A stretch of DNA of 64,000 nucleotides from Cyanophora paradoxa CCMP329. Its lineage: Eukaryota > Plantae > Glaucophyta. Position 1 is the stretch's first letter. Each line of letters starts with the position of its first letter. The notes beneath the pieces are model-generated. The model searched no databases, was not told the DNA's origin, and saw only the letters and a list, made by a program, of their open reading frames with translations. Both the position numbers and the translations under genes were made by a program. The stretch covers positions 248,001 through 312,000 of the forward strand of contig QPMI01000542.1 of the NCBI GenBank assembly GCA_004431415.1, written 5' to 3'. Shown here in pieces: positions 3,578 to 43,352 of this stretch.

Positions 3578-3865
3578 CCCATAGCTCAAGGCCGGGCATC
3601 TCTAGATCATCTGAGACATAGCTCAGGATCTAGTTTCCGATATCCGTAGTGAGCAGTCTGAATTTCCGATGAGCACTCCCAGCGCTTGCCCCTGTCTGGC
3701 CAATCATTGTTCTTCGAGGTCCTAAGAATGAAACAAACATAACCTGCTATTGATCCCGCCTGCACCTCCTATCTACCCCTCTGCACAGCTCTGGCGGCTA
3801 GGAACGGAGACGGCACAAAACTAAGCGGCCGGGCAGCAGCCCGCGGCGCGGCGGCCGGCGGGGCT

Positions 3866-19888: not shown

Positions 19889-20110
19889 CCGTCGAGGCCG
19901 CCCCGCGGCGTCGCGGCATCCGCTGAGCTTTCGCCCAGCCCCTTTAGTGTAGTTTGTACGTCCCCGCGCATATTTCAATCACTTCTATCTCTAGGAACTT
20001 CCCCGTCTGCTCCGCGCTCGTGTCGGGCCGCCCGGGAGAGCCCCGGCGTTGGGCACTGCTTGTCGTACGAGTTACACAGGGCTTGGCATCATGATCGTAG
20101 GTCACTATGG

Positions 20111-21075
20111 CTATACATCGATGGTGGCCAGGGGGTTCCGGGGGTCGGGCGCGGGGGGGAGCTCCTTGGGCAGGGCCTCGGCGGCCGCCGCGGCCGCCGC
20201 GGGGCTGATGATCGCGGCCCCCTTCCAGACTTGGCCCTTGAGGAACTCGCCCGTGTGCCGCGCGCCGTTCGAGAACTCGAACGTGCTGCGGGCGGGGCTC
20301 AGCGCGGGCCAAGCTCGGCGCGGGCGGACCGGGCGGGGCGGGGCGGGGCGAGCGCACCCGGGGCCCTGGGGCAGGTTCGAGGACCAGTTGCCCGAGTACA
20401 CGAGGCCGTCGGGGTGCACGAAGGCGCCCTCAGCCATCGACCCGTTCTCCCACCGGCCCTGCATCTGCGAGGCGCGCGCGTTCGGGCCTCAGCGCGCGCC
20501 GCCGCAGTAGCCGGCCGCCAGCGCCCGCCCGCCCGCCACGCACCGAGGTCCGCGTCGCGCTGAAGTAGTATGTGCCTGACCCGTGCCTCTGGTTCGCCTT
20601 CCACTCGCCAATGTAGGTATCCTGGTTCGTGTATGTGTACTTGCCCCGCCCCTCGCGCTTGTCGTTCCAGAACTCGCCCTGCCGCCGGCCGCGCTAGCTA
20701 AGCAAACGGAGCGGCGCGGCGGGGCGGAGAACGCGAACGCACCTCGTATTTCCGGCCGTCTGGCCAAGTCATGACGCCGTGGCCCTGCCGCTTGTTGTCC
20801 ACGTAGTCTCCCTCGTAGACGGAACCTGGGCGGAAGCGGAGCGTCAATGCGCCGCGGCGGGAGCGCTTCCCGGTCAAAGCAGCGGGCGCACCGTCCTTCC
20901 ACGTGTACTTGCCCTTGCCCTCGCGCTTGCCCTGCACGTAGGAGCCCTCGTAGACATCGCCATTCGGAAACTTGTTCTTCCCGGTTCCGTGGCGTTGCCT
21001 CGTGGCCTCGTCACGCTCTCCTTCATACTCGCCCATTGGAGACATCTTCTGCTCCTCGCCTTCGCCCTCTGCCAT
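20111..21075 (-). CDS. RSPH1: MORN-repeat protein, radial spoke head 1-like
   Basis: GEYEGERDEATRQRHGTGKNKFPNGDVYEGSYVQGKREGKGKYTWKDGSVYEGDYVDNKRQGHG and further MORN repeats across about 5 exons. Confidence 0.75.
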
Positions 21076-21253
21076 CTTCGCTCTCTACCTTGCCGCCCGG
21101 CGCGCTGGAAATAACAGAAAACGCTCCTGTGTAGCTAGCTAGGCCAATGCTGCGCTGTGCCGCTCGCTCGGTGCTAATAGAGGCCCGCCTCCAAATCGGT
21201 CCGGCTCGTTTGTTCCCCCCCTCAACGGGATACAGGAATCGAAGGGCAAAAAA

Positions 21254-24200
21254 ATGGATGCCCGGCGCCGCCCGACCGTGGAGGCCGACAGCGCGATGCG
21301 CGCGCGGCTGGATGAAGCGCTCGCTGCAGCGCTTCTCGAACGCGCCGAGAACGAGGTCCGCGCGCTCTCCCTGCACGCGCGCCCAGTCATCGAGCGCGGG
21401 CGCAGCCGCTGGCGTACGTGAACGCGGTGCAAGGCTTCGCTGCTCTCGTTGCCGTCGACGCCGAGCTCCGCGTCGTCCACGCGAGCGCGAACTGCGCGTC
21501 GTTCTTCGAATCGGGTCGACGTCGACGTCACGTGCACGCGGAACCCCAAGGCCCGGCCGCGGGCTTGGATGCGCAGCAGAGCTTAGTGGGCCGCGCGCTT
21601 GACGCGTTCCTCGACCCCGAAGCGTTCCTCGAGCTCCAGGAGGCCGCGGAGGAGTGCCGGCGCGTGCGCTGCGCGGGGCTTTTGCATTCGGATGCGCAGG
21701 CGCCGGCGGCGGCCGCGGCCGGCAACGCGAACCTTGAAGGAGAGCACATGATCAAGCCCTCGGACAAGGTGGAGATCAAGGTTAGCCGCTCACAGATCAA
21801 GGTCAGCCGCTTACATCAGCTGCAATGCGCTGATGGGATCCCCGCGCGCGCAGATCGAGTCGAGCGGGCGCTTGCTGAACTGCATTCTGCACGACCTGCG
21901 CGAAGAGGATCTCATCTGTATCGAGTTTGAGCCGTGCACATGCGGTCCGCGCCTTTGAATTGCGCATGCGCTTCTAACGACGTCGATGCGCATGCGCAGT
22001 GCGGCAGCACCGAGCCACGCGCCGAGCATCTCTATCTCATGTGCAGGATGCCATCGGTTCGGCCTTGCCCGCACCGTCATTCTGCCTTCGAAGTCTTCCC
22101 GAACGGCCCCTGCAGAGTGCCTTCGCACGTGCCAGGATGTCCAGTCGATCTGCGAGGAGGCCACAAAGAGGGTGCGTTTGATTTCTCATTTTCGTGCTTC
22201 CCGCGCGCAACGTTGGCCACGCTCATCTCACGCGCGCTTGCGCTGCCCCGGCCCCGGCCCGCAGCTCATCAACATGGTCGCCTTCGATCGATGCCTCTTC
22301 TACAGGGTGCGCGCTCGAGCTAGATCCGCGCGCGGCTGATCGTTAGTTGGCCCGAAACTGAACGCGTATGCTCTTCAGATGGACCGGAGCGGAGAGGGCA
22401 CCGTCATCGCCGAAGTGCGCGAGAAGGTTTAATTTATCTTGGGATCTTTAATTTAATCTGGCCGAACTCGAGCCGCAGGCGATCGTGGATAACGCCCCTC
22501 CCGAGACAACAAGCAGAAGATTCATCGGTTCGGGTCCCCTGCTCGCTGCCCCGCGCGCATCTTCGTCCATTTGGATCTAGACACCCCCGGCCCCCTGCAG
22601 GTCTGCGGTACCCGGCCTGGGACATCCCTCCCGCGGCGCGGCGCTTCTTCCTCCAGAACCGCCAGCGGCTCATCCAGGACGCCGCCGCCCGTGCGTGAAC
22701 GCGACAAGCTTCGAATTCAGCTTCGCCGCTCTAGAGTCTGTTCCGCTCGCGATCGCTAATGCAAAGTGCACGTGCAGCGCCGATAGCCATCGAGCCGCCG
22801 CTGAACAGCCGGACGGGACGCCCCCTCGACCTGACCCTCGCGGACTCCCGCCGCGCCTCCCCCTGCCACCATATCCTTCCTCCGCGGCCGGCCCGCGGCT
22901 TCAGCTTTTGCCGCGCCCTGCGGTCGACGTCGGGAGGAATCGGACGCTGCGCCGTCTTGACCCCTGCCCACTGCAGTACATGCTGAACATGGGCACCCGC
23001 GCGTCCCTCGTGCACGCCGTCGTCGTCCACGGCCGCCTCTTCGGTGCGGCTCTATGTTGGCTCGAATTCACTGAGTCATTGGCCGTACGCGCGGGCCGAG
23101 CCTTTGCTTAAGCGGCTGCCCCGGCCCGCAGGCCTGCTGGTGCTGCACAGCGCCCGCCCTTCCTTCGTCTGCTACGACGTGCGCCAGGGCCTGGCCACGT
23201 TCGCAGAGGTGCCATATGCATCAGCCTGTCTTGGATATATATGACGGGATATGCATATGGCCGCGGGTTCTGTGCGCGACGCTTTATTTGATCAGTGGTT
23301 TTGACCTTGCATTTCGCGCAGAGCGTGAGCCTGGTGCTCGAGAAGCGCTTCGAGATGGCGAGGCACGTCTCGGAGGTTCGCGGCCGCGAGCTGCACTTCA
23401 AGGTCAGCTGAGCTCGAAGCGCCAGAGCGCGCGCGGCGCCGGCCGCGAGCCGCGCCGTGTATCCTATACATCTCAAAGGCCGCTGCTAATGATCACGTCA
23501 TGACCAGGTGCTTTCTCGTGTAAACCAGGTGCGTTTCTCGTTTGGTCGCGGTTTCGCCGAGGCTCGCAATATTCATGTTCAGGCATATCAATTGATCTTC
23601 TATACAGGCGCCGAACCGGGACGCGGACGCGCTCAGCGTTAATTTCAACGGGCTCTGCTCGCCGGGGGGCCTCCTCGACGTCATCCCCGGCACCGAAGCC
23701 GCCGGGATCGTGCTCTTCCCAGAGCCGGAGAGCGCTGCATGCGCGGACGCTGCTGCGGTGCCGGAGCCGTGCTTGCGCATCGGGTTCTGCACCCCTTCCT
23801 CGGCATACGCATCCGCCCTCGAGGCGAAAATTTCTCTCGTGCGCGCGCATTGTCCCAGCTCCTGCGCCTTAAGCTTGCAGCTGGCCCGGGCCTATCGGCT
23901 TAAACTTGACTCGGGATCGATCGCTCAGCTCTGCCGCGACACGCTACCGGCGCTGAAGGAGGCGGAGCAGCGGGCGGGAGGGCCGGAGCAGCAGCAGCAG
24001 CAGGTCGGGTCCCATCGATATCCCTCCCCGAGCCCCCCTCGTGGCCTCAGCTTAGGCTGCGTGGCCTCTTATTATAATCATCGAGCCCCACTCGTGCCCT
24101 TGGCTCAGGCTGCGTGGCCTATAATTATAATCATCGAGCCCTACTCGTGGCCTTAGCTTAGGCTCAGGCTCCGCGCAGGGCCCGTTCGTGTGGTGCACGG

Positions 24201-27200
24201 AGGATGTGGCGGGAGAGCTCCGCAAGCTCGCCCGCGCCCCCTGGCTCGCGGAGCAGGTCCGGATCCCCCGAATACTATAGCTATTCCCGCTCTTACATTC
24301 TCTCTGTAATTAGGAAAGCGCTCTTCGAATTCCAGCTTAATCTTCCAGCGCTCTTTGCTCTAGCTGACGCATATTATAATTAACGCAGCGGCGGGAGGCG
24401 CTCGCGCGGCTCGCGGAGCTGTGGCCGGTCGAGCAGGCCGCCGGCTGCATCGCCGTCGAGTTTATTCCTGGCCGCGGGTCGGTTGATTATAAACGTTACA
24501 CGTGATACCTTGCATTAAGCTCAAGCTTATAAATTGCCTTGCGGCAGCTACCTCCTGTTCTTGAGAAAGGCGACGCGGCGGGAGGTGCTTTGGGGCGGCG
24601 ACATTCGGGGCGAGGCCGAAGCGCTGCTCGGCTCCGAGCAGCCCCCCACTCGGTACGTACCCAGCTCCCGATCGATATATATATCGCGAGATTAAATATA
24701 CATATAGAGTCCGATTTGCAGCATTAAATTGGTTTTCGAGCGACTTATAATTACATGGCTGAATCGCACGCAGGGACCCGGTCGCCGTGTGGAAGGTGGC
24801 GTAACCCCGGGCCCAGTCCAAAAAGATTAAATAGTATCATCCCCCCCGGGCCCAGATCTGGTGGCATCGTCTTAAAGATAGCTTGGCATCGCACATATGC
24901 ATCAACTTGCAAGTGCGCTAAATTATAACGTTGACGTGTGCGTGTATATATGCGCATGCAGGAGCTGCAGGAGGACAAGTCTATGCCATTCCTGCACGAG
25001 GACGTCAACGTCGCAGGTCCATTGAGCCTTATAATTGACCTTATATTAAAGCAAAAGCGCGCGGGCATGAGCGCCGGCGTAATTAAATAAATATACATCT
25101 AATTATAATCTTCTAATTATAATCTTCCAAGCTGACGCGTCGCTTGCAATTGTCGCCATGGCAGCCGCGCTGGGCCGGGGCCTCGTCGACGCCATCCAGC
25201 TCGCCAACAGCGTCTACTCCCGCGGCCGCGCCATCGTCGAGGTGAGTGAGCTGCCCCGCGAACGAGCAGCGTTCACGGCCCGGGCTCATGACGCTTAGAA
25301 ACGCTAGCTTTAGATCTTAGAAGCTTTAAAGCTTAGAAGCTTTTAAAGCTTAGAAGCTTTAGAGCTCAGAAGCAGCGTCAGCGGCCCGGGGTGAGCGGCC
25401 CGGGCTCATGATCGATGCCAGCTGAGCGAACGGGAGCTCGTTCGGCTGGGCAACGCGAAGCTGAGGACCCTGGCGGGGGAGCTGCGCCGCGTCATCGAGA
25501 CCGTCCCGGTGAGGAATACATATATATATAATCAGCCGCTTAGAAGCTTAGGGCTTATATATTAGAAGAGCTTGCATATATAATCAGCCGCTTAGAGGAC
25601 CGTCCCGGTGAGAGGAGAGGCAGCCGGTCTCGCGATCGCGGCCATGGCCAGTGTGGTCGCGCTGGAGGGCTGACGCGCGCTGGCTTGCAGGTACCCGTGG
25701 CGAGCGTGGACGACTCCATGTCTATCGAGGGTGCCCGGCCTGCGACATCGATATCGATCTGCACCTTTAGTATCGTCAACGATCCTGATCACATTCGCAT
25801 GCATTGCCAGATTGGAACGACGCCTGCGCCGACTTCTTCGGGTCCGCACGCCACGCCACGCCTTGCGCTCTAGATCTGCCCGCTCGCTTGCAGTTGCTTA
25901 AGCTTCGAATCCGCTTGCAATCGCACCGTGCAGCCTTTCTCGGGACGAGGTGCTCGGCAAGCCCTTCGCGGAGACGTGCTTCGGGCCCTCCCAGCGCGCC
26001 ACCGGTCCGCATTGAAATTGAAACGCGCCCTATAGCTGGCTAGCTATCCACCGCGCGCTCCGGATCCCTACCCTCTAGCTGGGCCACCTAACCGGCCACG
26101 CCGCAATTGCAGTTCAGAAGCTGCTGGTCAGCGCCCTGTCCGGCATACAGACGCGCGACGATGCGGTGCGCGCTCATAAAATTATCTGTTGTTAATTGAA
26201 GGCTGCCCTTTGTCGTGTCTATCATAAGAATAATAATATTAATCCGACGCTGGCCAGATTCGAGATCCATCTCTTGGCCGCGAGCTGAGCAAACGCTGCC
26301 CGATCTCAACTAAACTCCGCGCTGAGGTGAAACGCCGCTTGGAATTTATCCTTGCAAGCCCGCGGCGTCTGTGCACTTGGTAATCCGAGGCGCCGGCGCC
26401 CGGTGTCGATGTCTCAGTTGGCGGTGCGGCGGCCCGGTGCCGACAAAGACTCTGTCGTCTGCATCTATGCGGTTCCGGTGGGTTATGCAATTAATAATTG
26501 TAATAGATCCACAGATATCCCTTCCCTAGCCCTGCTTCGCTGCGCGCCACTCCGCTGTACTTGTGCGATGTCGTGACTTCATTTTTCCCCTTGCCAGCGC
26601 TTCGATCCTGCCGTCAGCGGCATCTCTGGGGCGATCGCGATGCTAATCGGTGAAGGCAAGCATGTCTATCAATCGATAATAAAGCTTTTCGGGTTTCATT
26701 GTGTTCGTTTCTGATGGAATCGCCCGGCCCCATCTCCCCACAGACATCGACGCGCTCGATCATGACGGAAACGGAAGCGAGAACGGCAACGGAGAGACCC
26801 GCCCGGTACGTATACGAGCGTGTGTCCAAGCTTGCCCTGCAGCTGGTCTTCCGGCAGCAAACGAAAGCGCGCGCTTCGGCTATACAATTCCTTGCGGTTA
26901 TGATGAAATATTGCATCGCCTTTCGCAGTCAAAAACACCGTTTACCAATGTGGCTGCTTCCGTCTTTCTCGCAACCGTCTCCCACGGTGCGCGCACGCGC
27001 GCGGGTCGGTAGGCCCTGTAGCTAGCGCTGACGCTCATACTGCTTCGAACGCTGCAGAAGTGCGAACGGTGCGTACCTTTGCGGCTTCGAAATTCTCGGG
27101 AAATTGAAATCGCTTCCATTTTCTCTGCGGCTAACGTTGCTTTCTTTCGATGCGTGGCCGCTCTGTCTGCGCGCGTCATGCAGCCCCTCAACGGTAAGCC

Positions 27201-30200
27201 CTAGGCCTCCGGATACCAAGGCCACACCCGTCCTCCGACTCGATTCACTAATTATATTACCGCCCTTGCAGGACTGCTTGGGATGCTCCAGCTCTGCATG
27301 TGCGCCCGCCCTCCGACTCCCGCGCGTCCGCTCTCTAATTGCACAACCGACGTTTTAGGGACGCGCCCCTGCCGGAGGAGACGGCCAACTTCCTGAGGAA
27401 GGCATACACCTCGGGTGCGCGCGGCGCTCGTGATCAATTCCTTCGGTCCCTTTGCCCCGGTTGACGTCTTGCGGTTTACTTAATTTCACGCATGGGAATT
27501 CAGCGGAGTACCTGCAGATCCTGATGGGCGACATCCTCGACATCTCCCTCATGGAGGCCCGCAAGCTCGTGTGCGCGCGCGGCTTCTCTCTCTCTCTCTT
27601 CCCTCTCCCGGAAACTGCTACTGAAACTTTAATTTCGCCAGACTGAAGCCGACGCGGGTCGTCATACGGGAGCTCTTCGACTGCTGCGCCGCGCTCGTCG
27701 CTCCCAAGGTGCGTTACATATTTTTAGTATTTAAGTTTATGCAGCGGCTGCGCGCGGCTGTTAACGTTGCCGCCCTCGCGATCGCCTTTGGTCCCGACCG
27801 CTTCTCTATAGCTAGTTCTCACCTCCGGTCCCGGCCCGCCTCTCAGGCCGACGAGAAGGGAGGCTCGCTGACCATCGAAGTCGACGCCGGAGTGCCCCGC
27901 GAGATGGAGGGCGACGCGAACAGGCTCCGGCAGGCGCGCGCGCGCCTTCATTTGACAGAATAATCGATCTAAGAACCGCCTTGCAGGTTATCATCAACTT
28001 TCTGTCCAACGGGATCAAATACTCCAAGGTGCTTTTAATGCACTCTGTGTCTTGCAATTACATCCAAGAAATAAAAGCACTAAGTCACTTGCGGTCCGCT
28101 GATCAAGCTGCACACGTTCGAATTTGATCCGCAGCGCGGAAATGTTCGCCTCCGCGCGCTGCGCATTCCGCCCGGCGCCGAGGTGCTGCAGCGTCGACTT
28201 TGCCGGCGGTCGATCGTATTAATGTCGCCTCGCCCGCGGCCGGCGCACGCACGCGCAGGCCCCTGCACGGCTAGCCGGGCCCGCGAGGCCGGCGCCGCGG
28301 ATCGAGCACGCCGCACCGGGGCGGGATATGGTGCACGACCAGCTTTTCGTGGAGGTGCTCCGTGGCCGCGGCGGATCCGCCGAGCGACTGATACTGATCG
28401 GCGCGCCCACAGGTTCAGGACGACGGTATCGGGATCGCCGAGACCGACTTCGGGCGCTTGTTCCACCTGTTCAGGCGCGCCTCGGCTCCCTGACTACACT
28501 CGCGCGCTGCAGGTATTGCACGGCCGAGTCGGTCTGACAGGGGCCGCGGCGCGTGCGTGTGCACAGTCGCGTGTTCAAACCGGAGCGCCGGGCGCGGCAA
28601 GCGCACCTGGGCCTGGGCGGGCTCGAGGCTGGAACGGACCGCGGCTGCCTCGAAACCGACCCCGGGGGGTCGGGTCTCGGCCTCGCCGTGTGCCGCGTGC
28701 GCTCCAGCTCGCACCCCATCGTCGACGTCGGGATTAACGCGCCAGCGACGCGGCGCGCGCAGGAGCTCGTCGAGCTCATGCGCGGCGTCATCGGCTGCGC
28801 GTCGGTGCTTAATCTGGACATGCTGCATTTACATCTAACGTCTCTTCAAGAATTGATTCGTACGTGTCCGTGTACAGGCGCCAGGGATTGGCAGCGCCTT
28901 CTACTTTTGCGTACCTCTGCTGCCTCCGGAGCCCGCCGAGCCCGAGGTTCTCGCCGACCCGGCCCGGCCTCCGCTCCAATTCTGACCGTAAACGAACCCT
29001 CTCTTCCAGGCGCCGACGCCGCCCCCGTCTCCCGCGCGGGCGCCGAACCCGGCGGCTCCGTCACCCGCCCCGGCGGCCCCATTCGTGCGTTCAGGCATCG
29101 CTCTTTTCGCTGCAGTACATTTTTTTGTATTATCGCAAATATCTACCCGCCGGACAAGAGCTGCATTACATTTTCTTGTATTATCGAAAATATCTACGCG
29201 CGCAGGAGCGGCCCCCGTTCGTGCTGCTTGTTGAGGGTGCGCCTTTGTATTGTCGAGTCCGGGTTGAATTCAATGCTCAATTGCGAGCTCGGAATTATAT
29301 ATACATCAATTTTCAGCTCAGCTGCGAAGGCGAATTGAAGCGAAGTATAAAGAGAATGATAACATTCGAGCTGGGCCGCGCCGGGATGCGCTGCGCATGC
29401 GGTTTCAGCGGTCAATTAATTAACGGCCCCACAGACAACCCCTTCAACCGCGAGGTGGCTCGGATAATGCTCGCCAAGAGCGGCTGCGAGGTCGAGACGG
29501 TGCGCAAATCAAGGATTGAAGCTTAAGATGTATGGCACTGAGCTGGGACAATTTTATATCGACTTTCGCAGGCGGAGGACGGGCTGCAGGCGGTGGAGGC
29601 GTTCGCGGCGCGGCAGGAGGCGGGGCGGCCTCCGTACGACTGCATTCTCATGGACTGCGAGGTGCACGCGCGCGCCACATTAGTATTCTCCTCTGCGGCC
29701 TCGAGCTCGTTTCGCTGCGCTGCGCTGACCCGCGCGCACATCGCAGATGCCTGTGCTAGATGGGCGAGCAAATTAATTCGAGATTCGTCCGTGTTCCCGC
29801 TCCGGCCTCACAGTGGCGCAGGCTCGGAGCCACGCGGGAGATACGGCAGATCGAGGGGACCTCCCCCGCGCCGGCGCGGGCCGTCCCCATCGTGGCCCTG
29901 GTTCGACGCCGCGTTTTCGTGACTCTTATCTCTCGCGACCGCTCTCTGAACTTTGGCTCTCGCCGCTGAACGCGCAGACCGCCCACGGTACCCCACCGCG
30001 CCGCTGCGCCGCGCCCTGGGCTTTGAGCTCCTCACCTCGAATATCGCCTTCAAAATCCGTTTCCTCAGATTAGAACAGGGCTAAATTTAAACTAAACTGA
30101 CAGCAAGTTTGGATTCGCGTGCACCTTTCTGAGATTGTATACTCCGCGCCGGACGCAGAGCTGGACGAGAAGCGCGAGGCGTGCCTCGCGGCCGGCATGA

Positions 30201-30354
30201 CCGACTTCGTGCGCCCCCGAGCTCGAGCTCCCCTTCCGTCTCCGTTCCCTCCCTAACTCTCGCCGGGCCGGGGCCGGGGGTGCAGGTGACGAAGCCGGTG
30301 ACGAAGGCGAAGCTCCTCGCCGCCGTCCTCCGCGCCGCGAGGGCCCAGGCCTAG
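21254..30354 (+). CDS. Phytochrome hybrid histidine kinase 1 (PAS-GAF-PHY-PAS-HisKA-HATPase-REC), highly intron-rich
   Basis: PAS YVNAVQGFAALVAVDAELRVVHASANC. GAF GLRYPAWDIPPAARRFF...DSRRASPCHLQYMLNMG. PHY LWGG. PAS DWNDACADFFG. H-box FLATVSHEVRTPLNG, N-box NFLSNGIKY, DDGIGI, GGSGLGLAVC. REC VEDN...LMDCEMPVLDG...ALTAH...TKP. TAG at 30352-30354. Confidence 0.92.
22871..22971 (+). other. U12-type (minor spliceosome) AT-AC intron in phytochrome 1
   Basis: Starts ATATCCTT, has branch-like GTCTTGAC about 10 nt from the end, and ends CCCAC. Removal joins TGC CAC C|TG CAG TAC ATG, giving C-H-L-Q-Y-M. Confidence 0.9.
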
Positions 30355-30594: not shown

Positions 30595-32268
30595 GGGGGG
30601 GGGGGGGGGGCAACGTTTTTGAGACAGTACTCGTCCCGGCTGCGCGCTATTTCTACCCATATGCACCCCAATAAGCGAATGTAGGTCTAGAGATACGTGA
30701 ACAAGAATCCGACAAGATTGGTATAGTTCAAGAGCGACGGCTGGCCGGATATGTACAAGGACGAGGAACGGACACAAGCAATCATCAGGACTTCAAGCGC
30801 TTTGCGTTCTCTAGATGTAGAGAGATGAAAAGTGCCGACCCATGAGCTACTTGTACGAGATCGTCACGCGGAGGAGGGCGCCTTGCAGTGCGCTGCGCAT
30901 GTCGGCATCGAGGGCCGAGGCGGCCTCGCGCTTGAGCACGAGGCAGCGGAGGCGGCAAAGGGAGGAGACGGCAACGAGCCCGCCCGCCGAGCTGAGGGGC
31001 AGCGGCGAATAGACAGTGAGCTCCCGGAGGGAGGGGACGTCGGACGCCAGCCGCTGCGGCAGCAGAGGAACGCCGCGACTACGAGTGAGCCTTCAACACG
31101 AAACCAAGATCTAGAGTCGCAAAAACAAATTAAACCGACTGGCCATGGGGGGGGGGGGGGGGGGGGGGGGCAACGTTTTTGAGACAGTACTCGTCCCGGC
31201 TGCGCGCTATTTCTACCCATATGCACCCCAATAAGCGAATGTAGGTCTAGAGATACGTGAACAAGAATCCGACAAGATTGGTATAGTTCAAGAGCGACGG
31301 CTGGCCGGATATGTACAAGGACGAGGAACGGACACAAGCAATCATCAGGACTTCAAGCGCTTTGCGTTCTCTAGATGTAGAGAGATGAAAAGTGCCGACC
31401 CATGAGCTACTTGTACGAGATCGTCACGCGGAGGAGGGCGCCTTGCAGTGCGCTGCGCATGTCGGCATCGAGGGCCGAGGCGGCCTCGCGCTTGAGCACG
31501 AGGCAGCGGAGGCGGCAAAGGGAGGAGACGGCAACGAGCCCGCCCGCCGAGCTGAGGGGCAGCGGCGAATAGACAGTGAGCTCCCGGAGGGAGGGGACGT
31601 CGGACGCCAGCCGCTGCGGCAGCAGAGGAACGCCGCGACTACGAGTGAGCCTTCAACACGAAACCAAGATCTAGAGTCGCAAAAACAAATTAAACCGACT
31701 GGCCATGGGGGGGGGGGGGGGGGGGGGGGGCAACGTTTTTGAGACAGTACTCGTCCCGGCTGCGCGCTATTTCTACCCATATGCACCCCAATAAGCGAAT
31801 GTAGGTCTAGAGATACGTGAACAAGAATCCGACAAGATTGGTATAGTTCAAGAGCGACGGCTGGCCGGATATGTACAAGGACGAGGAACGGACACAAGCA
31901 ATCATCAGGACTTCAAGCGCTTTGCGTTCTCTAGATGTAGAGAGATGAAAAGTGCCGACCCATGAGCTACTTGTACGAGATCGTCACGCGGAGGAGGGCG
32001 CCTTGCAGTGCGCTGCGCATGTCGGCATCGAGGGCCGAGGCGGCCTCGCGCTTGAGCACGAGGCAGCGGAGGCGGCAAAGGGAGGAGACGGCAACGAGCC
32101 CGCCCGCCGAGCTGAGGGGCAGCGGCGAATAGACAGTGAGCTCCCGGAGGGAGGGGACGTCGGACGCCAGCCGCTGCGGCAGCAGAGGAACGCCGCGACT
32201 ACGAGTGAGCCTTCAACACGAAACCAAGATCTAGAGTCGCAAAAACAAATTAAACCGACTGGCCATGG
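30595..32268. repeat. Three tandem 560-bp copies, each beginning with a poly-G run and containing the last exon and 3' flank of F-box paralog 2
   Basis: CAACGTTTTTGAGACAG starts at 30611, 31171 and 31731, preceded by G16, G24 and G24. The copies look identical by eye. Confidence 0.92.
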
Positions 32269-34224
32269 CTGACCTTCAGGAAAGCACCCGGAATTTCGGA
32301 ATGGTTCTCCTTGCATTCAATGGCCAGCTCTTTGAGACCCGTCCACTGCTTCATTGATTCCCTTGCGAAAGCCGCGAAGGTCGTTGCCGACAATCTGAGT
32401 TCTAGATTCTGCAATTCGGTTCGGATCCTAGTTACGGGATGCGGGCCATCATTTGGCAGCATATGCAGCATAATTAAATTTAAATACTAGTAATCATGGA
32501 AGGGTGAAGCTTACTCTCAGCTCAACCAGCTTGGAGGCGGTTGCAGCGAACGATGCGGAGGCAGCTTCGTCCAGACCACTGTGCACAAGGATGGCACTTT
32601 GTAGGCTGCCAGCAATGGAAAGAAGCGACGAAATGTCCGTTGGGCCCTTAAGCTTCATGTCCAGGCGGATGTACTCCAGCTGTCGCATGCCGCCGACGAA
32701 GACAATGTTCATATGCCACAAAACAACAGAATATGCTGCCGATGGGCGAGACGGTGGTGAGTTGCTTTTCTACTGAGTTGGCATTTGTAGTTATTCACCG
32801 CGCAGAGAGGAGAGGCCGGAGAGCGGCTGCAGGTCCGCTTCGGAAGCGCTTGGCCATATTCTCAACCCGACCTTGTTGTAGAATTCTAAGGAAACTTAAG
32901 TTGGCTACCAAAAAAGGCAACAATCGGAACTTGTTCAAAGCACACCCACTGTAAGCTGCTCAAGCAGCCGGAAAGCGGCGATCGACGAAAAGATGGGAAG
33001 CAAAGGGCCATAATAATTGCCGATGACGCCACACTTCAGCCGCTTGAGCGTGTGGGCCAGTGGTGCGAGGACTTGCAGAGTTTCGAGGGTCATCGGCAGG
33101 CTGCGTGGCAGATGGTGACGTCGACACGAAGCCGAATCCAAAATAAATGAATTTTAAACGCCGCACAAGGCGAGTTCCAAAGCCCGCAGTGGAAGGGAAG
33201 CCAACGCCTGGAGGGCCCCCTGGACGATCGGTCCCGCTGCCATGTTGATGTTCTCCTGCAGCCAGTCCGACGATACTCCCCAAATGTACAACTGAATTTC
33301 CGACAAACATCAGATGCAGCTGATGTTGGGAATAAAGGGAGATCGAAGGCATTAAATAATCGCTACCTGCTGGAGTCGCGAGAAGTGCTGAACTGCTGGC
33401 AGCACGGCTCTGGCGATGGTGCTTTTGAATACAATGACCAACTTCGTAAGCTGCTCGCCGACTGATTTGCTAAGCTTGATGAAAGAGCCGTCGTTGAGAT
33501 CGCCGTTCGCCAGAACAAGAGAGCCCAGGGCTTCCCGGCGCTTGTTCGGCTGATCAAGAAGCGCATCGATGAATCTGTCGCTGGCTGGTTGGACTTGCAT
33601 GCGCTGCCAAAGGCTGGGCTGCTGGGCGAGGCTGCGGAAGCGGCGGGAGACGTGGCTCAGCCGCACGAGCTTGTCGAGAATTTGATCGGTGCAACGACGG
33701 GAGCCGGAGTACTCTTGGATTGACCCAGTCTTTAGGTAGCTCCACTCCGACGCCTTGCCGATGATGCGCGTGACGAGGTCGTCGGGCAGCGCGTCGAATG
33801 GGCTGCCGCCGGCCGCCATCGCCGCCGCCACGCGCGAGAGCGCCGCCGCGGAGCTCGAAGCTGCGGACGATCGCGAATAAGCGCGATGCTATCGCAGGCT
33901 ATATATATACCTAGGCAGCGGCGGCCGCGCCAGATATTGACGCAATGCGCACCGGTACCCTGTTCATGATCAACTGCATATGTGTGTATATGGCCACCCT
34001 GATCATGGCCAGCTGAAGCTGCAGCCGCGACCGCGCTCGACGACGATGCTCCCGCAGAGAAGGTGCCAGATCCTTTCGACGTGCACGTGAGCAGCAAAGG
34101 AGGGCTCAGAGAAACGCGCGCGGGCGCGCGCCGCGCGGGCGCGCGCGGCTCGAGGTGGCTGACCTGCCGGCGGCAAATCTCCCGCCCTCGCGCGCTTCGC
34201 CGCCCGCTCGCGCGCCAGATGCAT
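31967..34224 (-). CDS. F-box/LRR-repeat protein (multi-exon), paralog 2
   Basis: MHLARERAAKRARAGDLPPA, then SPFDALPDDLVTRII...LVRLSHVSRRFRSLAQQPSLW, colinear with 1598-3577. Ends LLRVTISYK-TAG. Confidence 0.85.
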
Positions 34225-34590: not shown

Positions 34591-37500
34591 ATGAGCAATA
34601 CGCGGGAGCAGCAGGTATGCACAGACGACGAAAGCCAGCTGCACGCGAGGCTCGCGGCGCTGCGGGCGCACTCCGAGAGCGAGGTGCAAACATTCGATTT
34701 TTGCGCGATTTCTCTCGGCCGCGCGCGCCCTGATGCGTTTTCATGACAGCCCCTGGAATACGTGAATGCCGTGCAGGATTTCGCGGCCCTCGTCGCCGTG
34801 GATTCCGAATATCGCATCGCCCATGCAAGCGCGAATTGCGCCTCTTTCTTCGGGCTTCCTGGAGACTTTGGCAGCGTCGTGGGACGCTCGCTGGACGCGA
34901 TCCTCGATCCCGAAGCGCTGCTCGAGCTTCGGGAGGCCTCCGAAACGCCGTTCAGGGATTGCCGCGTGGCCCGCCCGAAATCGAATGCCGAGGGAGACAA
35001 GGCGGCTTCTGTCATCGCGAAGGCGGTGGAAATGAGCCCCGTGGTCAAGGTGCGTAGCGGAAAGCCTTGAGTGAGCGCGCACGTGCGCGCGCCAAAAATC
35101 GAAATTTTAATATGTGGTCCAGATCGAGTACGGCGGGCGCGTGCTGAACTGTATCGTTCATGCGATGCACGAGGAGGGCCTCGTCTGCATCGAATTTCAA
35201 AACTGCACATGCAGTGAGTCGACTCATGCATGTAGAGGCCGCGGCAGCGCGTGCGCTTTAATTTAGATATGGATCTCGAACAAATGACTAAGACACGCAG
35301 TCACAAATCAGCGGGTCGCGCGGAGGGCGTCTGCCCCTCGCGTCCGTCGCGCCATTGGTCTGTCTTCGCCCTTTTTCATGCACGCTGCGGATTTTAATTG
35401 GGGCGTGCAGAGTGCCTCCGCGCTTGCCAGGATCTCCACTCCATCTGCGAAGAGGCTGTGAAGCAGGTCATTTATATTCGTACTGCTAAATTGCACACAT
35501 TTCCAAACCGACCAACATTTCAGCTGATCGACATGGTCCCTTTCCATCGATGCAACGTTTATCGGGTCCGCATCTAGCTCATTCTTTAAATATAATTTAC
35601 ATTACTTCTCAGTTCGATCGAAACGGGGAGGGAAACGTCGTCGCTGAGGTTCGCGATCGGAAGGGTTTTTAATTCGGGGGTGGCCGAGGCCAAATCGAGT
35701 ACTGCAGCTGGTGACGTGCACCGCATGCGCAGGCGATAGCGGACGACGCCCCTCCCGAAATTGAGCGCTATCTCGGTTTGTCCCATTATATATACGCTGG
35801 ACGTCTGGATCTCCACATTCATACCCGGCCTTCAGGCCTGCGCTACCCCTCGTGGGACATTCCCGGCGTTGCTCGGCGCTTCTTCCTTCGGAACCGCCAG
35901 CGGCTCATCCAGGACGCCGCCGCACGTGCGTGAACGCGACATACATTCAGCTTTGATTTGGCGCTCTGATTTCCTGCTGATGCAATTGCAATCGTTCAAT
36001 GCACAGCGCCGGTCGCCATCGAGCCGCCGCTGAACAGCCGGACCGGCCGCCCCCTCGACCTGACCTTCGCGGACTCCCGCCGCGCCTCCCCCTGCCACCA
36101 TATCCTTGCCCCCGCTTGCCCCGTTGGCGCATTTCAAAACGCAGCGCTCTCTTGACCCCGCCCCACTGCAGTACATGCTCAACATGGGCACCCGCGCGTC
36201 CCTCGTGAACGCAATTGTAGTCCACGGCCGACTCTTCGGTGCGATCGCGCGCTCGAGCTCGGCTCCAGGCTCTGCGCACTAAAGAGGCCATCTGACGCGC
36301 GCGCGCGTGCGCAGGCCTGCTGGTGCTGCACGACGCCCGGCCGGCCTTCGTCTGCTACGACGTGCGCCAGGGCACCGCCCTGTTTGCGGAGGTGCGTCGC
36401 GAAAGATCTGATCATGACCGCAAAAATCTAGAGTGCGAAAGGCGCGAAGTAAATGCGAATTTCGCAGAGCGTGAGCCAGGCCATCGAGGGCCGGCTCGAG
36501 GAGTCCAAGCGCATCGCTGAGGCTCGGGCTCGCGAATTCCATTCAAGGGTGCGGAAATGCACTCAAATGCGCTCATGGGCGTAAATTTAAAGCAAACGCG
36601 ATTTCAGGTGCTAGCCAGGGTCAGTCTGGACAGGGATATTCTGGAGGCACTGTGTGGGGGCGGGGACGATGAAGTGTCGCTTCGGGAGGCGCTGCCCTCC
36701 TGTGACGCTGCCGCTATGGTCCTTTTTCCGGAAGATTCGCGCTCTGACGGTGCGGCAGCGTCGAGTTTGGCGGCTTCTAACTGGGCTCATTGTGTATGCG
36801 CAGCAGAAAATCCGCTGCACGCGACGGAGTCGTTTCCTCCACCCGGGCCCCGCGTCCGCGTCGGCGCTCCCGATCGATCCGAAGGATCACGCCTGGAGCC
36901 TCTACTGCTTGCGGTCCGTTCACTGTACATGATCGAATTGGATCCAAAAGTGACGTGCAATTTCCCGGATAGCTCTGCAGCGATGGAATTCCTGCGAAAA
37001 AGGAGGCCGACCGAATCGCCGGTGAGGAGGCAAAGATACCGGTGCGTTTACGCTGGCAGATCTAGATACCACAACTGCAACCCCTAGGCCTGTTTCGTAA
37101 GCGCTGAGTAAGACGTGTGATTCGAGCGGCAGGGTCCGTTCGTGTGGTGCACAGAGGATGTGGCGGGAGAACTTCAGGGGCTGGCCCACGCCACGGACCA
37201 GCTGCAGGACCCACAGGTTGCGAAATCCGCGGCTCTGCCTTTTTCGCACTAAAGCGTTTACGCCGGTATTCGCGTTTTTCGCAGCGGCGAGACGACCTCG
37301 CAGCGCTTGCGGGGCGCTGGCCCGTCGAGCAGGCCGCGGGTTGCATCGCCGTCGAGTTCATCACTGACCGCGGGTGCGAATGCACGCGGTTAAATTAGCT
37401 TCCTCAGTTCTGTAGGGAAACCTAAGATGCTTGCGCTGATTCTTCGCATATTTCCAGCTACCTGGTGTTTTTGCGCAAGGCGTCGCAGCAAGAAGTGCAC

Positions 37501-40500
37501 TGGGGAGGAAAGATTCAGAGGGAAGAAAGGGGCGCACCAGATTCGGAGCAGCACCTCTCTCCGAGGTAGATACACGTCAATCACATTCGCTTCTATCTAT
37601 TTCGATCCTCCTCGCGCTCAGAAAATCATTCGCACTCTGGAAGGTGCTCGCGGTACCGGTTGGCTGTGGATTTGCAGCCGTGCATTTGCAGCCGGACTGG
37701 CATGGCGCATATACCATTTTTGAAATCGCGTTCACACAAATTAAACGCAGGAGCTTCGAACCGACAAGGCCGTTCCGTTCTTGCCGGAGGAAGTGTACAC
37801 GGCCGCTGCGCTGGGGAGGGGCCTCGCAGACGCGGTCCACCTGGCGGAGAAGCTGTACTTCCGCGGTCGCTTCCTCGTCGAGGTGGACGCAATTCATGCT
37901 TGAAATCGACTGCCTTTTGACTCCGAGTACTTATTTCTTTTTCTGCGAAGCTGAACGCAAAGCTGGAGGAGGGGAATATGCGACTCCGGGACCTGGCCAG
38001 CGACCTTCGGCATCTTATAGAAACCGTCCCCGTGCGCTCTTTCGGAAGATTTAGATCTCGATGCACTTGTATTAATGGAGATCAACAATTAAATTTGCCA
38101 TCATCAAGTGGTGTTTAATGCAATGTTCATTGCGCAGGTTCCGGTCATTGGAGTTGACATCAACCTCACTATAGACGGTGCAGATTCGACTTCTGCTTTT
38201 AAAATCGGGATTGCAGCTTGCAGCGTGTCGCTGACGGTCATCTTTTGAAAAACCTGCAGAGTGGAATCCAGCTGCCTCGGACGTGTTCGGGTCCGTCTCC
38301 TTTAAGCGATCGCATCTTTATAAATTAAGTAAACTCGCGAGCCGTTCCGCTTCTGCCCTTTGCTGACGTGCGAATGCTGCAAATTAAAAGCTTTCCGCGG
38401 GACCAAGTGATCGGGGCCCGTTTCATTGAGACGTGCTTCCCGCCTGGCCAGTGGCCTGTAGGTAACCGAACGGCCGAACGGGGGGATAGAGGGCACGGAT
38501 CGGATCCGGGGCGGCCGCGGTAGAATTTAGGCGAGGGAATTAGATCCCCAGCTAGGAGCGGGGTGTGGCGGAGGCGCTAGGCTTGCTCCCGTTCAAGAAG
38601 CGGCGGCGTCCCCCGTTCGCAGGGCGCTGAAGTGCGCCAATTTATTAACGCGCCGCTTCTAGAACGGGAGAGGAACGCCTTTATCCTGCCGGAAGCCTGG
38701 TCTTCGCGCCCATACTCTGCGTTCCTCTCTTATTTAAATTTCACAGTGCAAAAGCTGATGGCCGATGCCCTCTCTGGTAAACCGCGATCTCCGCCTCGCT
38801 GTAGCGGGGTGGGTTTAATTTGAATTCGTATATATTTGTCTTCATCTGTCCATTGGTGAAACTCTAACGCATGTGCAGGAGTCTGCCGCCGGCGACTCGC
38901 CTGCGGGACGAAGGGCGGTCTGCCACCCTGCGGCGGTGCACCGCCTCAGCACGGAGGTCGTTTCCATATTAATGCGTATCCAATATATTGCGTGACCGCG
39001 AAAGGAACTGCATTTCATCTGGCAGGTGCAAATTCGAAGGCCAGGCGAAGGTCGTGAGTCGCGCATCTGTCTCTATGCCGTGCCGGTACGATGCAAGTTA
39101 ACAATCATTTCTGGTCCTGGTTGTGTACCTTAGCTTCAGCCCACATTAAATCGTGGGTGCAGCGCTTCGAGCAAAGCCCCTCGAGCACAAATTGCGTCGC
39201 CGGAGCCGTCATCGTGTGCGAGGGTGTGCCGTGAAAGACGTGTCGGCTGTTTTGGCATTCGATCGACATTCACGCAGATGTGACTGAGCGACGGGAAACT
39301 ATCGAAGCAGAGACACGTGCCGCTCAGGTGAGTCTCCATTTAATTTGCATGCGTACAGCTCAAAGCCTATATAATTATTATTCCTGATTCCTTACGCTCA
39401 CGATCAGGCAAGCGCCTCCAGCGCTGCAAAATCAGTATTCCTTGCCACAGTTTCACACGGTGCATAACGTCCGGCTGCCAGAGCCGGAAATCTATCTTTG
39501 CATAATGCGAACTTCTTTTTCCGCATTTCAGAAGTTCGAACGGTCTGTGCCCTCTATTGTGCTCGGATTCGAATCCGAAAATGATTTTCGCGCCTCTTTC
39601 CTCGTGCACGACACCCAATGATCAGCCCCTCAATGGTCGGGGACATCAATTCAATTTTCGCAGTGCACAAGCTTGCGCCGAGCTCATTCGATCGCCGCAG
39701 GGATCCTTGGCATGCTTCAGCTCTGCATGTGCGTGTCTTCAACCTTTAAGGGGGGGGGCGCGGCGCTCGACGCGGGCCTTGCAGGGACACGCCCCTGCCG
39801 AGCGAGGCGGCAGACTTCGTTCGGAAAGCCTACTCATCCGGTGCGCCCTTCGCGAATGCACAGCGCCCCGACCACTTTAAATGCATTGGGTCTTAATCTT
39901 GATAAAAAGCACATGCGAATTCGTAATTATAATGCATGGCCTTGCAGGAGAGTACCTGCAGCTTCTCATCTCGGACATTCTGGACGTGTCGCTGATTGAA
40001 GCGCGCAAGCTCGTGTGCGCGATTCCAGAAATTTCGCATTGAAGGCCGATCACGAGACCCTTAAGCTTTTCGCAGCTTGAAGCCGGCCTCATTCGTTGTA
40101 CGGGACCTCATTCACTCCGCCGTGGCGCTCCTCGCCCCGAAGGTACCGATTCTGTAACTTAATTACACAGAGTCAGTTGCGATTCGGGTTTCGAGCAGGC
40201 CGAGGGCAAAGGGGTGGCGCTGCGGGTCCAGATCGACGACGACGTTCCGGAGGAGATGGAGGGCGACTCCGACCGCCTCCGGCAGGCGAGCCCAGAAAGC
40301 TTGTAAATAGCATATATAAATCTTAGCCAAGAAGGAACGATTAGCTTATATAATTAGAAAAGCCTCCAGAGCCTCCTTATCATGATAGTGCGCGTGGAAG
40401 CTGCAACAAATTTATATCGTTCGCTCGCATCGCGATCAGGTCTGCATCAACCTGCTGATGAACGCGATCAAGTACTCGAAGGTGCGATCCACGCACCGCA

Positions 40501-43352
40501 GCAGCCGCTGAGCGTGACGCCGGGTCGCTCTATCGATCTCAGGGGGGCACCGTCCGCCTCCGCGCCCTGCGCCTGCCCCCGGGCGCCGAGGTGCCGCCGG
40601 CCCGTCCCCCTGCATCCGTCTTCGCTTATCGTCTTTTCATCTTCGGCAGCTGCCGACGGGGCTGGAGGCGCCGCGGGTGGAGCACGCGGCCGAGAACCGC
40701 GACGAGGCCGGCGACCGCCTCTACGTCGAGGTAAATAACACTATAATTAGAGATTTTGAAATCGCGTTCCCAAAGCTTCGTGACCACCGCTGGACTTCTT
40801 CGAAGAGCTTAATCGATATCGTTGAGATATGTAATCATGCTTTTGAATCGTGATCGATATCTAACTCGGCTTGCCAAAAGACGCGATGTCGACTTATTAT
40901 TCGCGATGGACCACGACTTCCTTGAGGCGTTAAACGTTCTCGCGGCTGCAGGTGCGGGACGAGGGGATAGGCGTGCAGGAGGAGGACCTGTCCCGCCTCT
41001 TCCACCTCTTCAGGTCCCGGCGAAATTCCGAAATTCAGCGTTACAATTAAATATTACGCTCACTTCATTGCGCTCGTTTTCGACAGCCGGGTGTTGAAGA
41101 CGGGCTCGGGGCCCGCGGCGCCGAGCTCGGAGCCGAGCTCGGATGCGGGAAAGGCCTCCCCGGTGCGGCGTGAATGCTGAGCAGTTAATCGCTGAAACGT
41201 TCATTTCTGGCCGCTGCCCTGGCCTTAAGCTTCATGTTCGCCAACAGCGTCCGGCGGCGGCGCCGGCGCCCGGGGCCGACCGCCTCGTCGCCGACCCCGG
41301 GGGGACGGGCCTCGGCCTCGCCGTCTCCCGCGTGCGCCGCCCGCCCCATCAGAGGTTGCACGCGCGATTGGCTTGGCTAACTTAAGATTCGAGCTCGGTG
41401 TCATAGCGTTCGGTTAGCGTATACATTAAGATCGACAAGTTAATTGCACGGATAGTCATATAGATGATATGATCATGAAAGGTTCATATGAATAGCTGTC
41501 TCCCGCGTGCTCTCCGCCCTCCATCGTCTTGAATTGGATCGGTTGCGAATATTAATATTGATACGCGAATGCGCAGGAACTCATCATGCTCATGCGCGGC
41601 GTCATCGGCTGCACCTCGGTGCTTCGCTGCTCTAAATCTCCTGCGGCTTCTTCCATTTTCTGGCTCGCGCCAACGACCGCCCCAGGCGCCCGGGGTGGGG
41701 AGCGCTTTCTACTTCGTCGTTCCCATCGCTCCGACCTCGGCGGCGGCGTCGGCCTCCGCGGAGCACGCGCGGCCGGCCGCGTGCTCGGCGCCCGCTGTCG
41801 AGGCCGAGGCCTCGAGCTCGGCCGCGCCGCTCAGCGAGGTAACCAAGCCCTCCTCGAGCTCGCGCTGTTTCGAATCCAACCTAAGACCTAATCATAATTA
41901 TATTGGAACAGGCACCCGAGGGGCCGTCCGGGTCCGCGGCTGCCCGGAGCCCACACGTGCTCCTTGTCGAAGGTGCGCCCTCCTCACAAGCTTAAGTAAA
42001 GGATATCCTAAAACGCTATCTAAATTAAAGCGTACAAACACGGTGGGGAAATTGAATACAGTGTGCCGGTGAAATGAAACGCTGAAAAAACTCGAGCATA
42101 TCAAATTCGAAGAAATCATGACGGCGTCGGCGCCGCAGACAACCCCTTCAACCGCGAGGTGGCGCGGCTGATGCTCACCAAGAACGGCTGCGAGGTCGAG
42201 ACGGTGCGAAATGCAGCCGATCGAAATTTGGCTAAAGATTTACGGCGCTGAGCTGCGAAAATCGGCGTTCGCAGGCAGAGGACGGGCGGCAGGCAGTAGA
42301 CGCGTTCGCGGCGAGGCAGGCGGCCGGGGGCCCCCCGTACGACTGCATCCTCATGGACTGTGAGGTGCGTTTGCGTGCGGCGCCTGCGCGCTGGGCCCGC
42401 GCCCGCAAGGCCTGCGCTGAGCTGCTTGCGCTGCCCGCGCAGATGCCTGTGCTGGACGGGTGATCATAAGCGAATTTGCGAAGTAAGAGTCAACGCCGGT
42501 CTCACGATCAGAGCGGCGCAGTCTGGGGGCCACTCGGGAGATACGGCGGCTGGAAGGGCTCTCTGATGAACCGGCGCGGCCCGTCCCCATCGTGGCCCTG
42601 GTTCGATGCGGCGTTTTCGCGCTGGAACTACGTCTGCTAACTATGCGCTCCTGCTTTTTCGCGCACGTGCAGACCGCCCACGGTGCTTGCCGCGCACTAC
42701 ACCGCGAGCAGCTTTCGCAGGGACCCTGGCGGACAGAAAATAAAACTAGAGCAGACGCGATATATAGCTGCAAGAATACGGGCGGGAATAAAGAACATTT
42801 TGACGCCCTCGCAGCGATGCGGGAGCAGCGAGACGCGTGCCTGGCCGCCGGCATGACCGACTTCGTGCGCGGGTTTGAATTTTGAGTCGCCGGCTTAAGC
42901 TTGGATATATATTGACTCGAGTTTTTATCTCGCGCGCAGATGACCAAGCCGTTCTCTAAAGTGCGCGAATCGCGATTAGGTCGACGTCTCTCTCCTTTCA
43001 ATCTCCAACCAGTTTCGCTTCTTCGCATTCGCAGGCACAGCTGCTCTCGGCGGTCGGCAAGCACGCGGGGGGTGTCGCCGCCCCCCACGCTCACCCGACG
43101 CGCCCGCTCGCCCTCAGGGTTTGCCGCCAACGCCCCCAGCACTTATGTTTCGCGGCGCCGGCCCGCATCCGGTCGGAGTCTGCCAGGCTGACTCGGACTG
43201 GGATCGCTCGATCCAGCGCGGCTCGCAGCGCGGCTCGCAGAGTTCGACCACGGACTCTGCTTGCACGGCGGAGGACTAATATAATCAAAACAGACTTGAG
43301 AGATCGTTTATCTTGTAGCATAGAAAACTCGTCAAAACTTGGAAGCATGTAA
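34591..43352 (+). CDS. Phytochrome hybrid histidine kinase 2 (PAS-GAF-PHY-PAS-HisKA-HATPase-REC); 3' end approximate
   Basis: YVNAVQDFAALVAVDSEYRIAHASANC. RYLGLRYPSWDIPGVARRFF...ASPCHLQYMLNMG. HWGG...LSPRKSFALWK. CEDVTERR. AKSVFLATVSHEVRTPLNG, NLLMNAIKY, DEGIGV, GGTGLGLAVS. REC LMDCEMPVLDG, TAH, TKPF. Confidence 0.92.
36100..36166 (+). other. U12-type AT-AC intron in phytochrome 2 (same position and phase as in paralog 1)
   Basis: ATATCCTT ... CTCTTGAC CCCGCCCCAC. Removal restores CAC C|TG CAG TAC ATG. Confidence 0.9.

Follow-up and report, generated by a model that had tools for sequence, protein, structure and literature searches.

Minor introns are already on record for the glaucophyte alga Cyanophora paradoxa, for which a pan-eukaryotic survey published 77 of them together with U11 (PMC10639083). 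A homologue of RBM48 was also reported in this species (bioRxiv 10.1101/341917), so that a minor spliceosome in this alga, which a sequence-only reading of the present locus had proposed, is supported but was already published. U11 was the only one of the four minor snRNAs found in C. paradoxa, which was read as possibly transformed machinery, and the catalogue scored annotated introns only (PMC10639083). The survey favored neutral persistence of minor introns, reported their de novo creation to be very rare, and found no rate-limiting control by minor splicing in a fungus (PMC10639083). Precedents for gain are the expansion in Physarum, dipteran Zrsr2, and 55 human-lineage candidates (PMC6865273). 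A bacterial source, with the cyanobacterial endosymbiont as the likeliest donor, is usually assumed for the photosensory module of archaeplastid phytochromes, on trees that are unstable, and the GAF cysteine of this module is the plant/cyanobacterial-type bilin site (PMC4422448). Glaucophyte phytochrome sensors (GPS) were placed as sister to the cryptophyte plus green phytochromes (PMC4525182). Here we describe an intron located directly after the bilin-binding Cys-His of two C. paradoxa phytochrome genes, which lie in a 64-kb stretch of genomic DNA (the window).

Results

Two Phytochrome Genes and Their Public Models

The window contains two phytochrome paralogs:

21254..30354, + strand, phytochrome paralog 1 (p1), PAS-GAF-PHY-PAS-histidine kinase-receiver, ~55 introns, ~1275 aa, model rough outside the GAF exons
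34591..43279, + strand, phytochrome paralog 2 (p2), p1-like architecture, ~56 introns, ~1210 codons, 3' end uncertain

Both were modeled by a rough Viterbi procedure with ~55 introns per gene, which is rough in the variable regions and firm in the GAF exons. Allowing AT-AC introns raised the score of both genes, which is not independent evidence as U12 signals were rewarded in the scoring. PAS_2 and PHY were matched in Pfam, and the GAF exons matched phytochromes of the PDB, showing a photosensory core in which the GAF Cys-His is present. At the motif level, an H-box (SH-EVRT-PLNG) and a receiver motif (DCE-MP) were read from the exons of both genes; p2 has the H-box SHEVRT, a PRKSF tongue (37458-37645), and the receiver Asp. 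The PHY-tongue motif PRxSF is missing from p1, which reads PPT-R-DPVAVWK (24548-24795) at a joint backed by an RNA contig of run X6. A Trp stands just before DIP in both paralogs (PAWDIP, 22601-22690; PSWDIP, 35836-35925) at a position occupied by Ser in the compared bacteriophytochrome (BphP), and may affect spectral tuning.

The p2 exon 34753-35049 is 100% identical to the EukProt C. paradoxa protein tig00021070_g17885.t1, and p1 corresponds to g17878.t1 (tig00021070), the 100% matches identifying both phytochromes as glaucophyte-encoded. The g17878.t1 model (308 aa) maps exactly to 21254-22695, runs into the GT-AG intron before the Cys exon, and ends at a TGA; g17885.t1 (137 aa) stops after exon 2. 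Neither public protein has the chromophore site, since both models end upstream of the Cys exon. The expectation that gene predictors would mis-model this site was hence justified, the p1 model ending one exon early. This p1 model is what a predictor lacking AT-AC introns would yield, while the cause of the p2 truncation is less certain. A third close paralog outside the window (tig00020999_g16975.t1) has a public model that also stops, at 142 aa. The present models repair two broken public gene models, and raise the number of full-length, Cys-containing phytochromes of this alga by at least two over the EukProt proteome.

Several further elements were noted around the two genes. Between them, three tandem units of 554-560 bp (30595-32268) are 100% identical and separated by poly-G runs, and 226 bp of the unit matches 3357-3582 (82%, inverted); they stem either from an element that expanded recently or from an artefact of the assembly. 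An F-box-like ORF (33352-33831, minus strand) also lies between the genes. An intron-split MORN-repeat-like gene, read by eye, occupies about 20100-21080 on the minus strand and starts ~170 bp from the p1 start codon, head to head with p1, for which a common promoter is possible.

Splice Signals of the AT-AC Intron

The elements of the intron and its flanking exons are as follows:

22778..22870, + strand, p1 GAF exon, ending in Cys (22864-22866), His (22867-22869), and base 1 of Leu
22871..22971, + strand, p1 candidate U12-type AT-AC intron, 101 nt, phase 1, DNA letters confirmed
22871..22878, + strand, p1 candidate U12 5' splice site ATATCCTT
22955..22961, + strand, p1 branch box TCTTGAC, with A at 22960 as the putative branch point and 11 nt from there to the AC end
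22972..23043, + strand, p1 GAF exon QYMLNMG...GRLF, containing the retention TGA 22984-22986 and a competing AG at 22975-22976
36007..36099, + strand, p2 GAF exon, ending in Cys (36093-36095), His (36096-36098), and base 1 of Leu
36100..36166, + strand, p2 candidate U12-type AT-AC intron, 67 nt, phase 1, with an in-frame TGA (36153-36155) within the branch box
36150..36156, + strand, p2 branch box TCTTGAC, with A at 36155 as the putative branch point and 11 nt from there to the AC end
36167..36238, + strand, p2 GAF exon QYMLNMG...GRLF

Both introns start with ATATCCTT, an RTATCCTT-type donor, and end with AC. Their branch boxes, CGTCTTGAC and TCTCTTGAC, resemble TTCCTTRAC and leave 11 nt between the putative branch A and the end of the intron, within the 10-20 nt range of U12-type introns. 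Removal of either intron restores the frame and gives ...SPCH-L-QYMLNMG, in which the Leu codon is split as C|TG (phase 1). Cys and His both reside in the upstream exon, so the intron does not separate Cys from His.

The donor sequence ATATCCTT alone occurs three times in the window against 1.2 expected, which is not above chance. The composite pattern of donor, box, and AC was found twice in the 64 kb, as compared with a mean of 0.01 in shuffled sequence, and none of 200 shuffles contained two. The 109 modeled U2 donors follow the consensus GTGCG and none of them has ATCC at +3 to +6; YYTTRAC was located in the 3'-end window of only two of the 109 modeled U2 introns. Between p1 and p2, all 8 donor bases and 14 of 18 bases near the 3' end are identical, whereas the intron interiors are unalignable (z = -0.7). 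Such retention of the splice signals within a diverged interior is the signature of a U12-type intron. The window has further RTATCCT-like sites (42006 minus, 4926 minus, 53504, and 23459), which were dismissed as minor donors by their context or geometry.

DNA contigs of run X1 reproduce the p1 intron letter for letter and also contain the p2 intron sequence, which rules out an assembly error as the source of the AT-AC introns. The sequence-only reading had proposed both introns with these lengths, a TCTTGAC box about 10 nt before the terminal AC, and signals conserved around diverged interiors, all of which were confirmed; its placement of a U12-type intron directly after the bilin-binding Cys-His in the GAF domain was borne out by the signals and the frame. 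Judged from the sequence, it is very likely a real U12-type AT-AC intron.

Duplication and Probable Gene Conversion

The AT-AC intron has the same position and phase in p1 and p2, and among the other positions compared, at least 24 more introns are common to the two genes. This indicates one intron copied by duplication, and two independent intron origins were rejected on the same grounds. The paralogs also have a GC-AG intron in common, with matching positions (27934, 40286).

Silent differences between the paralogs amount to 6 of 47 in the two exons flanking the AT-AC intron versus 114 of 312 elsewhere (Fisher p = 0.0008, post hoc). The U2 intron neighboring the AT-AC intron is alignable between the paralogs (z = 3.9), as is, at 29500/42204, an unrelated U2 intron (z = 8.1). 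The paralogs also share tracts of 22-41 nt without a difference, the long ones clustering at 22656-23190. The high-identity patches, which include the alignable U2 introns, are 22656-23190 versus 35891-36373 and 29432-29571 versus 42136-42274. Since the extra similarity recurs around the unrelated U2 intron, this pattern points to patchy gene conversion, not to a regulatory element, as the probable source of the similarity around the AT-AC intron. The low silent divergence of the flanking exons could instead reflect selection on splicing elements or enhancers.

Intron Retention and RNA

Retention of the AT-AC intron truncates both proteins, as had been pointed out before, through the TGA at 22984-22986 in the downstream exon (p1) and that at 36153-36155 inside the intron (p2). 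A frame break or stop upon retention was also obtained for 49 of 55 modeled introns of p1 and 51 of 56 of p2 (100/111, ~90%). The holoprotein needs the AT-AC splice, which is true as originally stated, but this dependence is not special, as most introns of both genes are equally destructive. Truncation upon retention was accordingly rejected as a sign of regulation. Splicing to the AG 5 nt past the AC end would change the reading frame, with a stop reached 86 or 65 codons later.

Across 21250-25300, RNA coverage was almost absent in three runs that probably hold RNA (X5, X6, and X8), and no contig crossed the AT-AC junction. One 159-nt RNA contig of run X6 (depth 3.4) bridges two p1 introns of the GT-AG type near 24651-24854, and p1 is hence transcribed and spliced at a low level. 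AT-AC splicing at 22870^22972 and 36099^36167 is inferred from the sequence.

The sequence-only reading had further suggested a splicing-level switch on light sensing. Spelled out, a rate-limiting minor intron, spliced according to light or growth state, would set the output of chromophore-competent phytochrome. In human cells, minor splicing is known to be rate-limiting via U6atac (PMC6865273), the intron is kept as U12-type in both paralogs, silent sites of its flanking exons show unusual conservation, and splicing to the competing AG 5 nt further on would break the frame. The two intron copies, however, count as one event, since duplication explains their presence in both paralogs; global control of the minor spliceosome would affect at least 77 introns, not this one alone; and the pan-eukaryotic survey favors neutral retention of minor introns (PMC10639083). 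Also against it, our literature search found no paper tying phytochrome to U12 introns. Such a switch is unsupported and appears very improbable. Light-dependent retention, if true, would connect minor splicing to light sensing for the first time in the literature covered by that search.

Register Test and Canonical Alternatives

All in-frame GT/GC-AG alternatives at both sites were enumerated, and none of them yielded CHLQYM in p1 or p2. The earlier statement that no GT/GC-AG solution exists consequently holds for CHLQYM; alternatives that keep Cys-His do exist, but they drop L-Q. In p2, the in-frame GT-AG pair 36123-36171 keeps Cys-His, adds ~6 residues, and drops L-Q, using a donor that ranks near the 10th percentile among real donors. 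No GT-AG option keeps Cys-His in frame in p1.

For the register test, the upstream and downstream exons were aligned separately to 120 bacteriophytochromes. Exactly one residue lay between the flanking exons in 120/120 of them, and it was Leu in 108. An identical one-residue spacing was observed for the PDB chains 5oy5, 4gw9, 5hsq, 5i5l, 6r26, and 4xtq. Because the homologues have one residue between the flanking exons, only the AT-AC cut, which restores one split Leu codon, fits this register. The aligned bacteriophytochromes have Ile, Val, or Met at the position of the Cyanophora Cys, as expected of biliverdin-binding BphPs.

A canonical GT/GC-AG solution was rejected on the absence of CHLQYM and the homologue register. 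In a broader form, the site would be cut by the major spliceosome at canonical ends (GT-AG 36123-36171 in p2, GC-AG in p1), or the AT-AC ends would be handled by the major or a hybrid spliceosome. The weak but possible p2 donor and U11 as the sole minor snRNA detected in the species (PMC10639083) speak for this reading. Each canonical option, however, alters the length between His and QYM that is constant in the 120 homologues, p1 offers no GT-AG pair keeping Cys-His in frame, and a complete U12 donor and branch geometry are preserved despite the diverged interior. We consider involvement of the major spliceosome highly improbable. Least probable of all is that the genes are decaying or poorly expressed, with the intron mostly retained and no holoprotein made from these loci: the nearly absent RNA coverage in three runs, the fragmentary public models, and the lack of PRxSF in p1 would agree with it, but both models are stop-free over ~1200-1275 codons with Cys-His, DIP, H-box, and receiver Asp intact, the GAF exons share 84-93% amino-acid identity between the paralogs, and a spliced p1 transcript is present in an RNA contig.

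Discussion

Proposed Explanation

Taken as a whole, the observations are best explained by an ordinary, constitutive U12-type intron inherited by tandem duplication, to which we assign a probability of about 0.8. The ancestral Cyanophora phytochrome gene would have had one ordinary U12-type AT-AC intron in its GAF exon, and tandem duplication of the whole intron-rich gene would have copied it. Its removal by the minor spliceosome would be constitutive. From established U12 biochemistry, U11 is expected to read ATATCCTT, and U12 to pair with TCTTGAC with one G-U wobble relative to the consensus. The short distance from branch to end would likewise favor the AC, which lies 11 nt beyond the branch A, over the AG located 5 nt further. 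Splicing would restore the helix after the bilin-binding Cys-His, while its failure would give a truncated PAS-partial-GAF product or a transcript that is likely degraded, as for nearly any intron there. Purifying selection, aided by patchy gene conversion between the paralogs, would keep the splice signals, and the location of the intron beside the Cys would be incidental.

The phytochrome AT-AC intron is newly identified, and its class was already known in this species. As the published catalogue was limited to annotated introns and the public models stop early, both introns were probably uncounted. The count of 77 is probably too low, since AT-AC introns break the very models that would be scored. 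None of the minor snRNAs (U11, U12, U4atac, and U6atac) was detected in the 64-kb window by Rfam search. The detection of U11 alone among the minor snRNAs of the species suggests that the machinery may be divergent.

Age of the Intron

Since the phytochrome is probably of bacterial origin, the AT-AC intron was probably gained after the gene entered the lineage. That a minor intron was gained in a bacterial-derived phytochrome gene, with no regulatory role, seems somewhat more probable than the opposite. Land-plant PHY genes are not known to have an intron in the GAF region. Three homologue searches for cDNA-derived glaucophyte phytochromes returned only the query or bacterial BphPs; a representative-sequence search gave only Cyanophora fragments, and the ESM Atlas gave PAS_2 clusters. 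Pattern and protein scans of metagenomes for related loci returned no match. A compound scenario, in which a photoreceptor gene taken over from bacteria gained the minor intron de novo and kept it as a light-dependent splicing gate operated by a divergent glaucophyte minor spliceosome, is very doubtful. For minor-intron gain, this locus offers a clean test case, a textbook AT-AC intron whose host gene is probably bacterial in origin.

Comparison with Known Systems

The phytochrome introns are similar to described U12-type AT-AC introns (Moyer et al. 2020, PMC7367187; Larue and Roy 2023, PMC10639083) in the ATATCCTT donor, the YYTTRAC-type box near the 3' end, the AC end, the lack of a polypyrimidine tract, and phase 1. 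They differ from the U12-type consensus in a branch box that has T for one C, giving the G-U wobble, and a likeness to this box is seen in TCCTTGAC, a branch variant listed for a soybean U12 intron. The host gene is also unlike that of usual U12-type introns, as it is a photoreceptor of probable bacterial origin and not an ancient core gene. With the 77 published C. paradoxa minor introns (PMC10639083), the phytochrome introns have both species and intron class in common.

With the GPS proteins (CparGPS1 KF597305, Cpar2 KF615870, and GwitGPS1 KF894953; PMC4525182), p1 and p2 share PAS-GAF-PHY, a single C-terminal PAS, a His-containing kinase, a receiver, and the GAF Cys that is the putative site of bilin attachment. 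They differ from GPS in that p1 is without PRxSF and that WDIP is present in both paralogs. Reported minor-intron gains (Physarum, dipteran Zrsr2, and the 55 candidates; PMC6865273) likewise involve a minor intron whose host gene probably arose after the last eukaryotic common ancestor. The phytochrome case differs from them in being a single intron, whose gain is deduced from the probable bacterial origin of the gene and not from an intron-position phylogeny.
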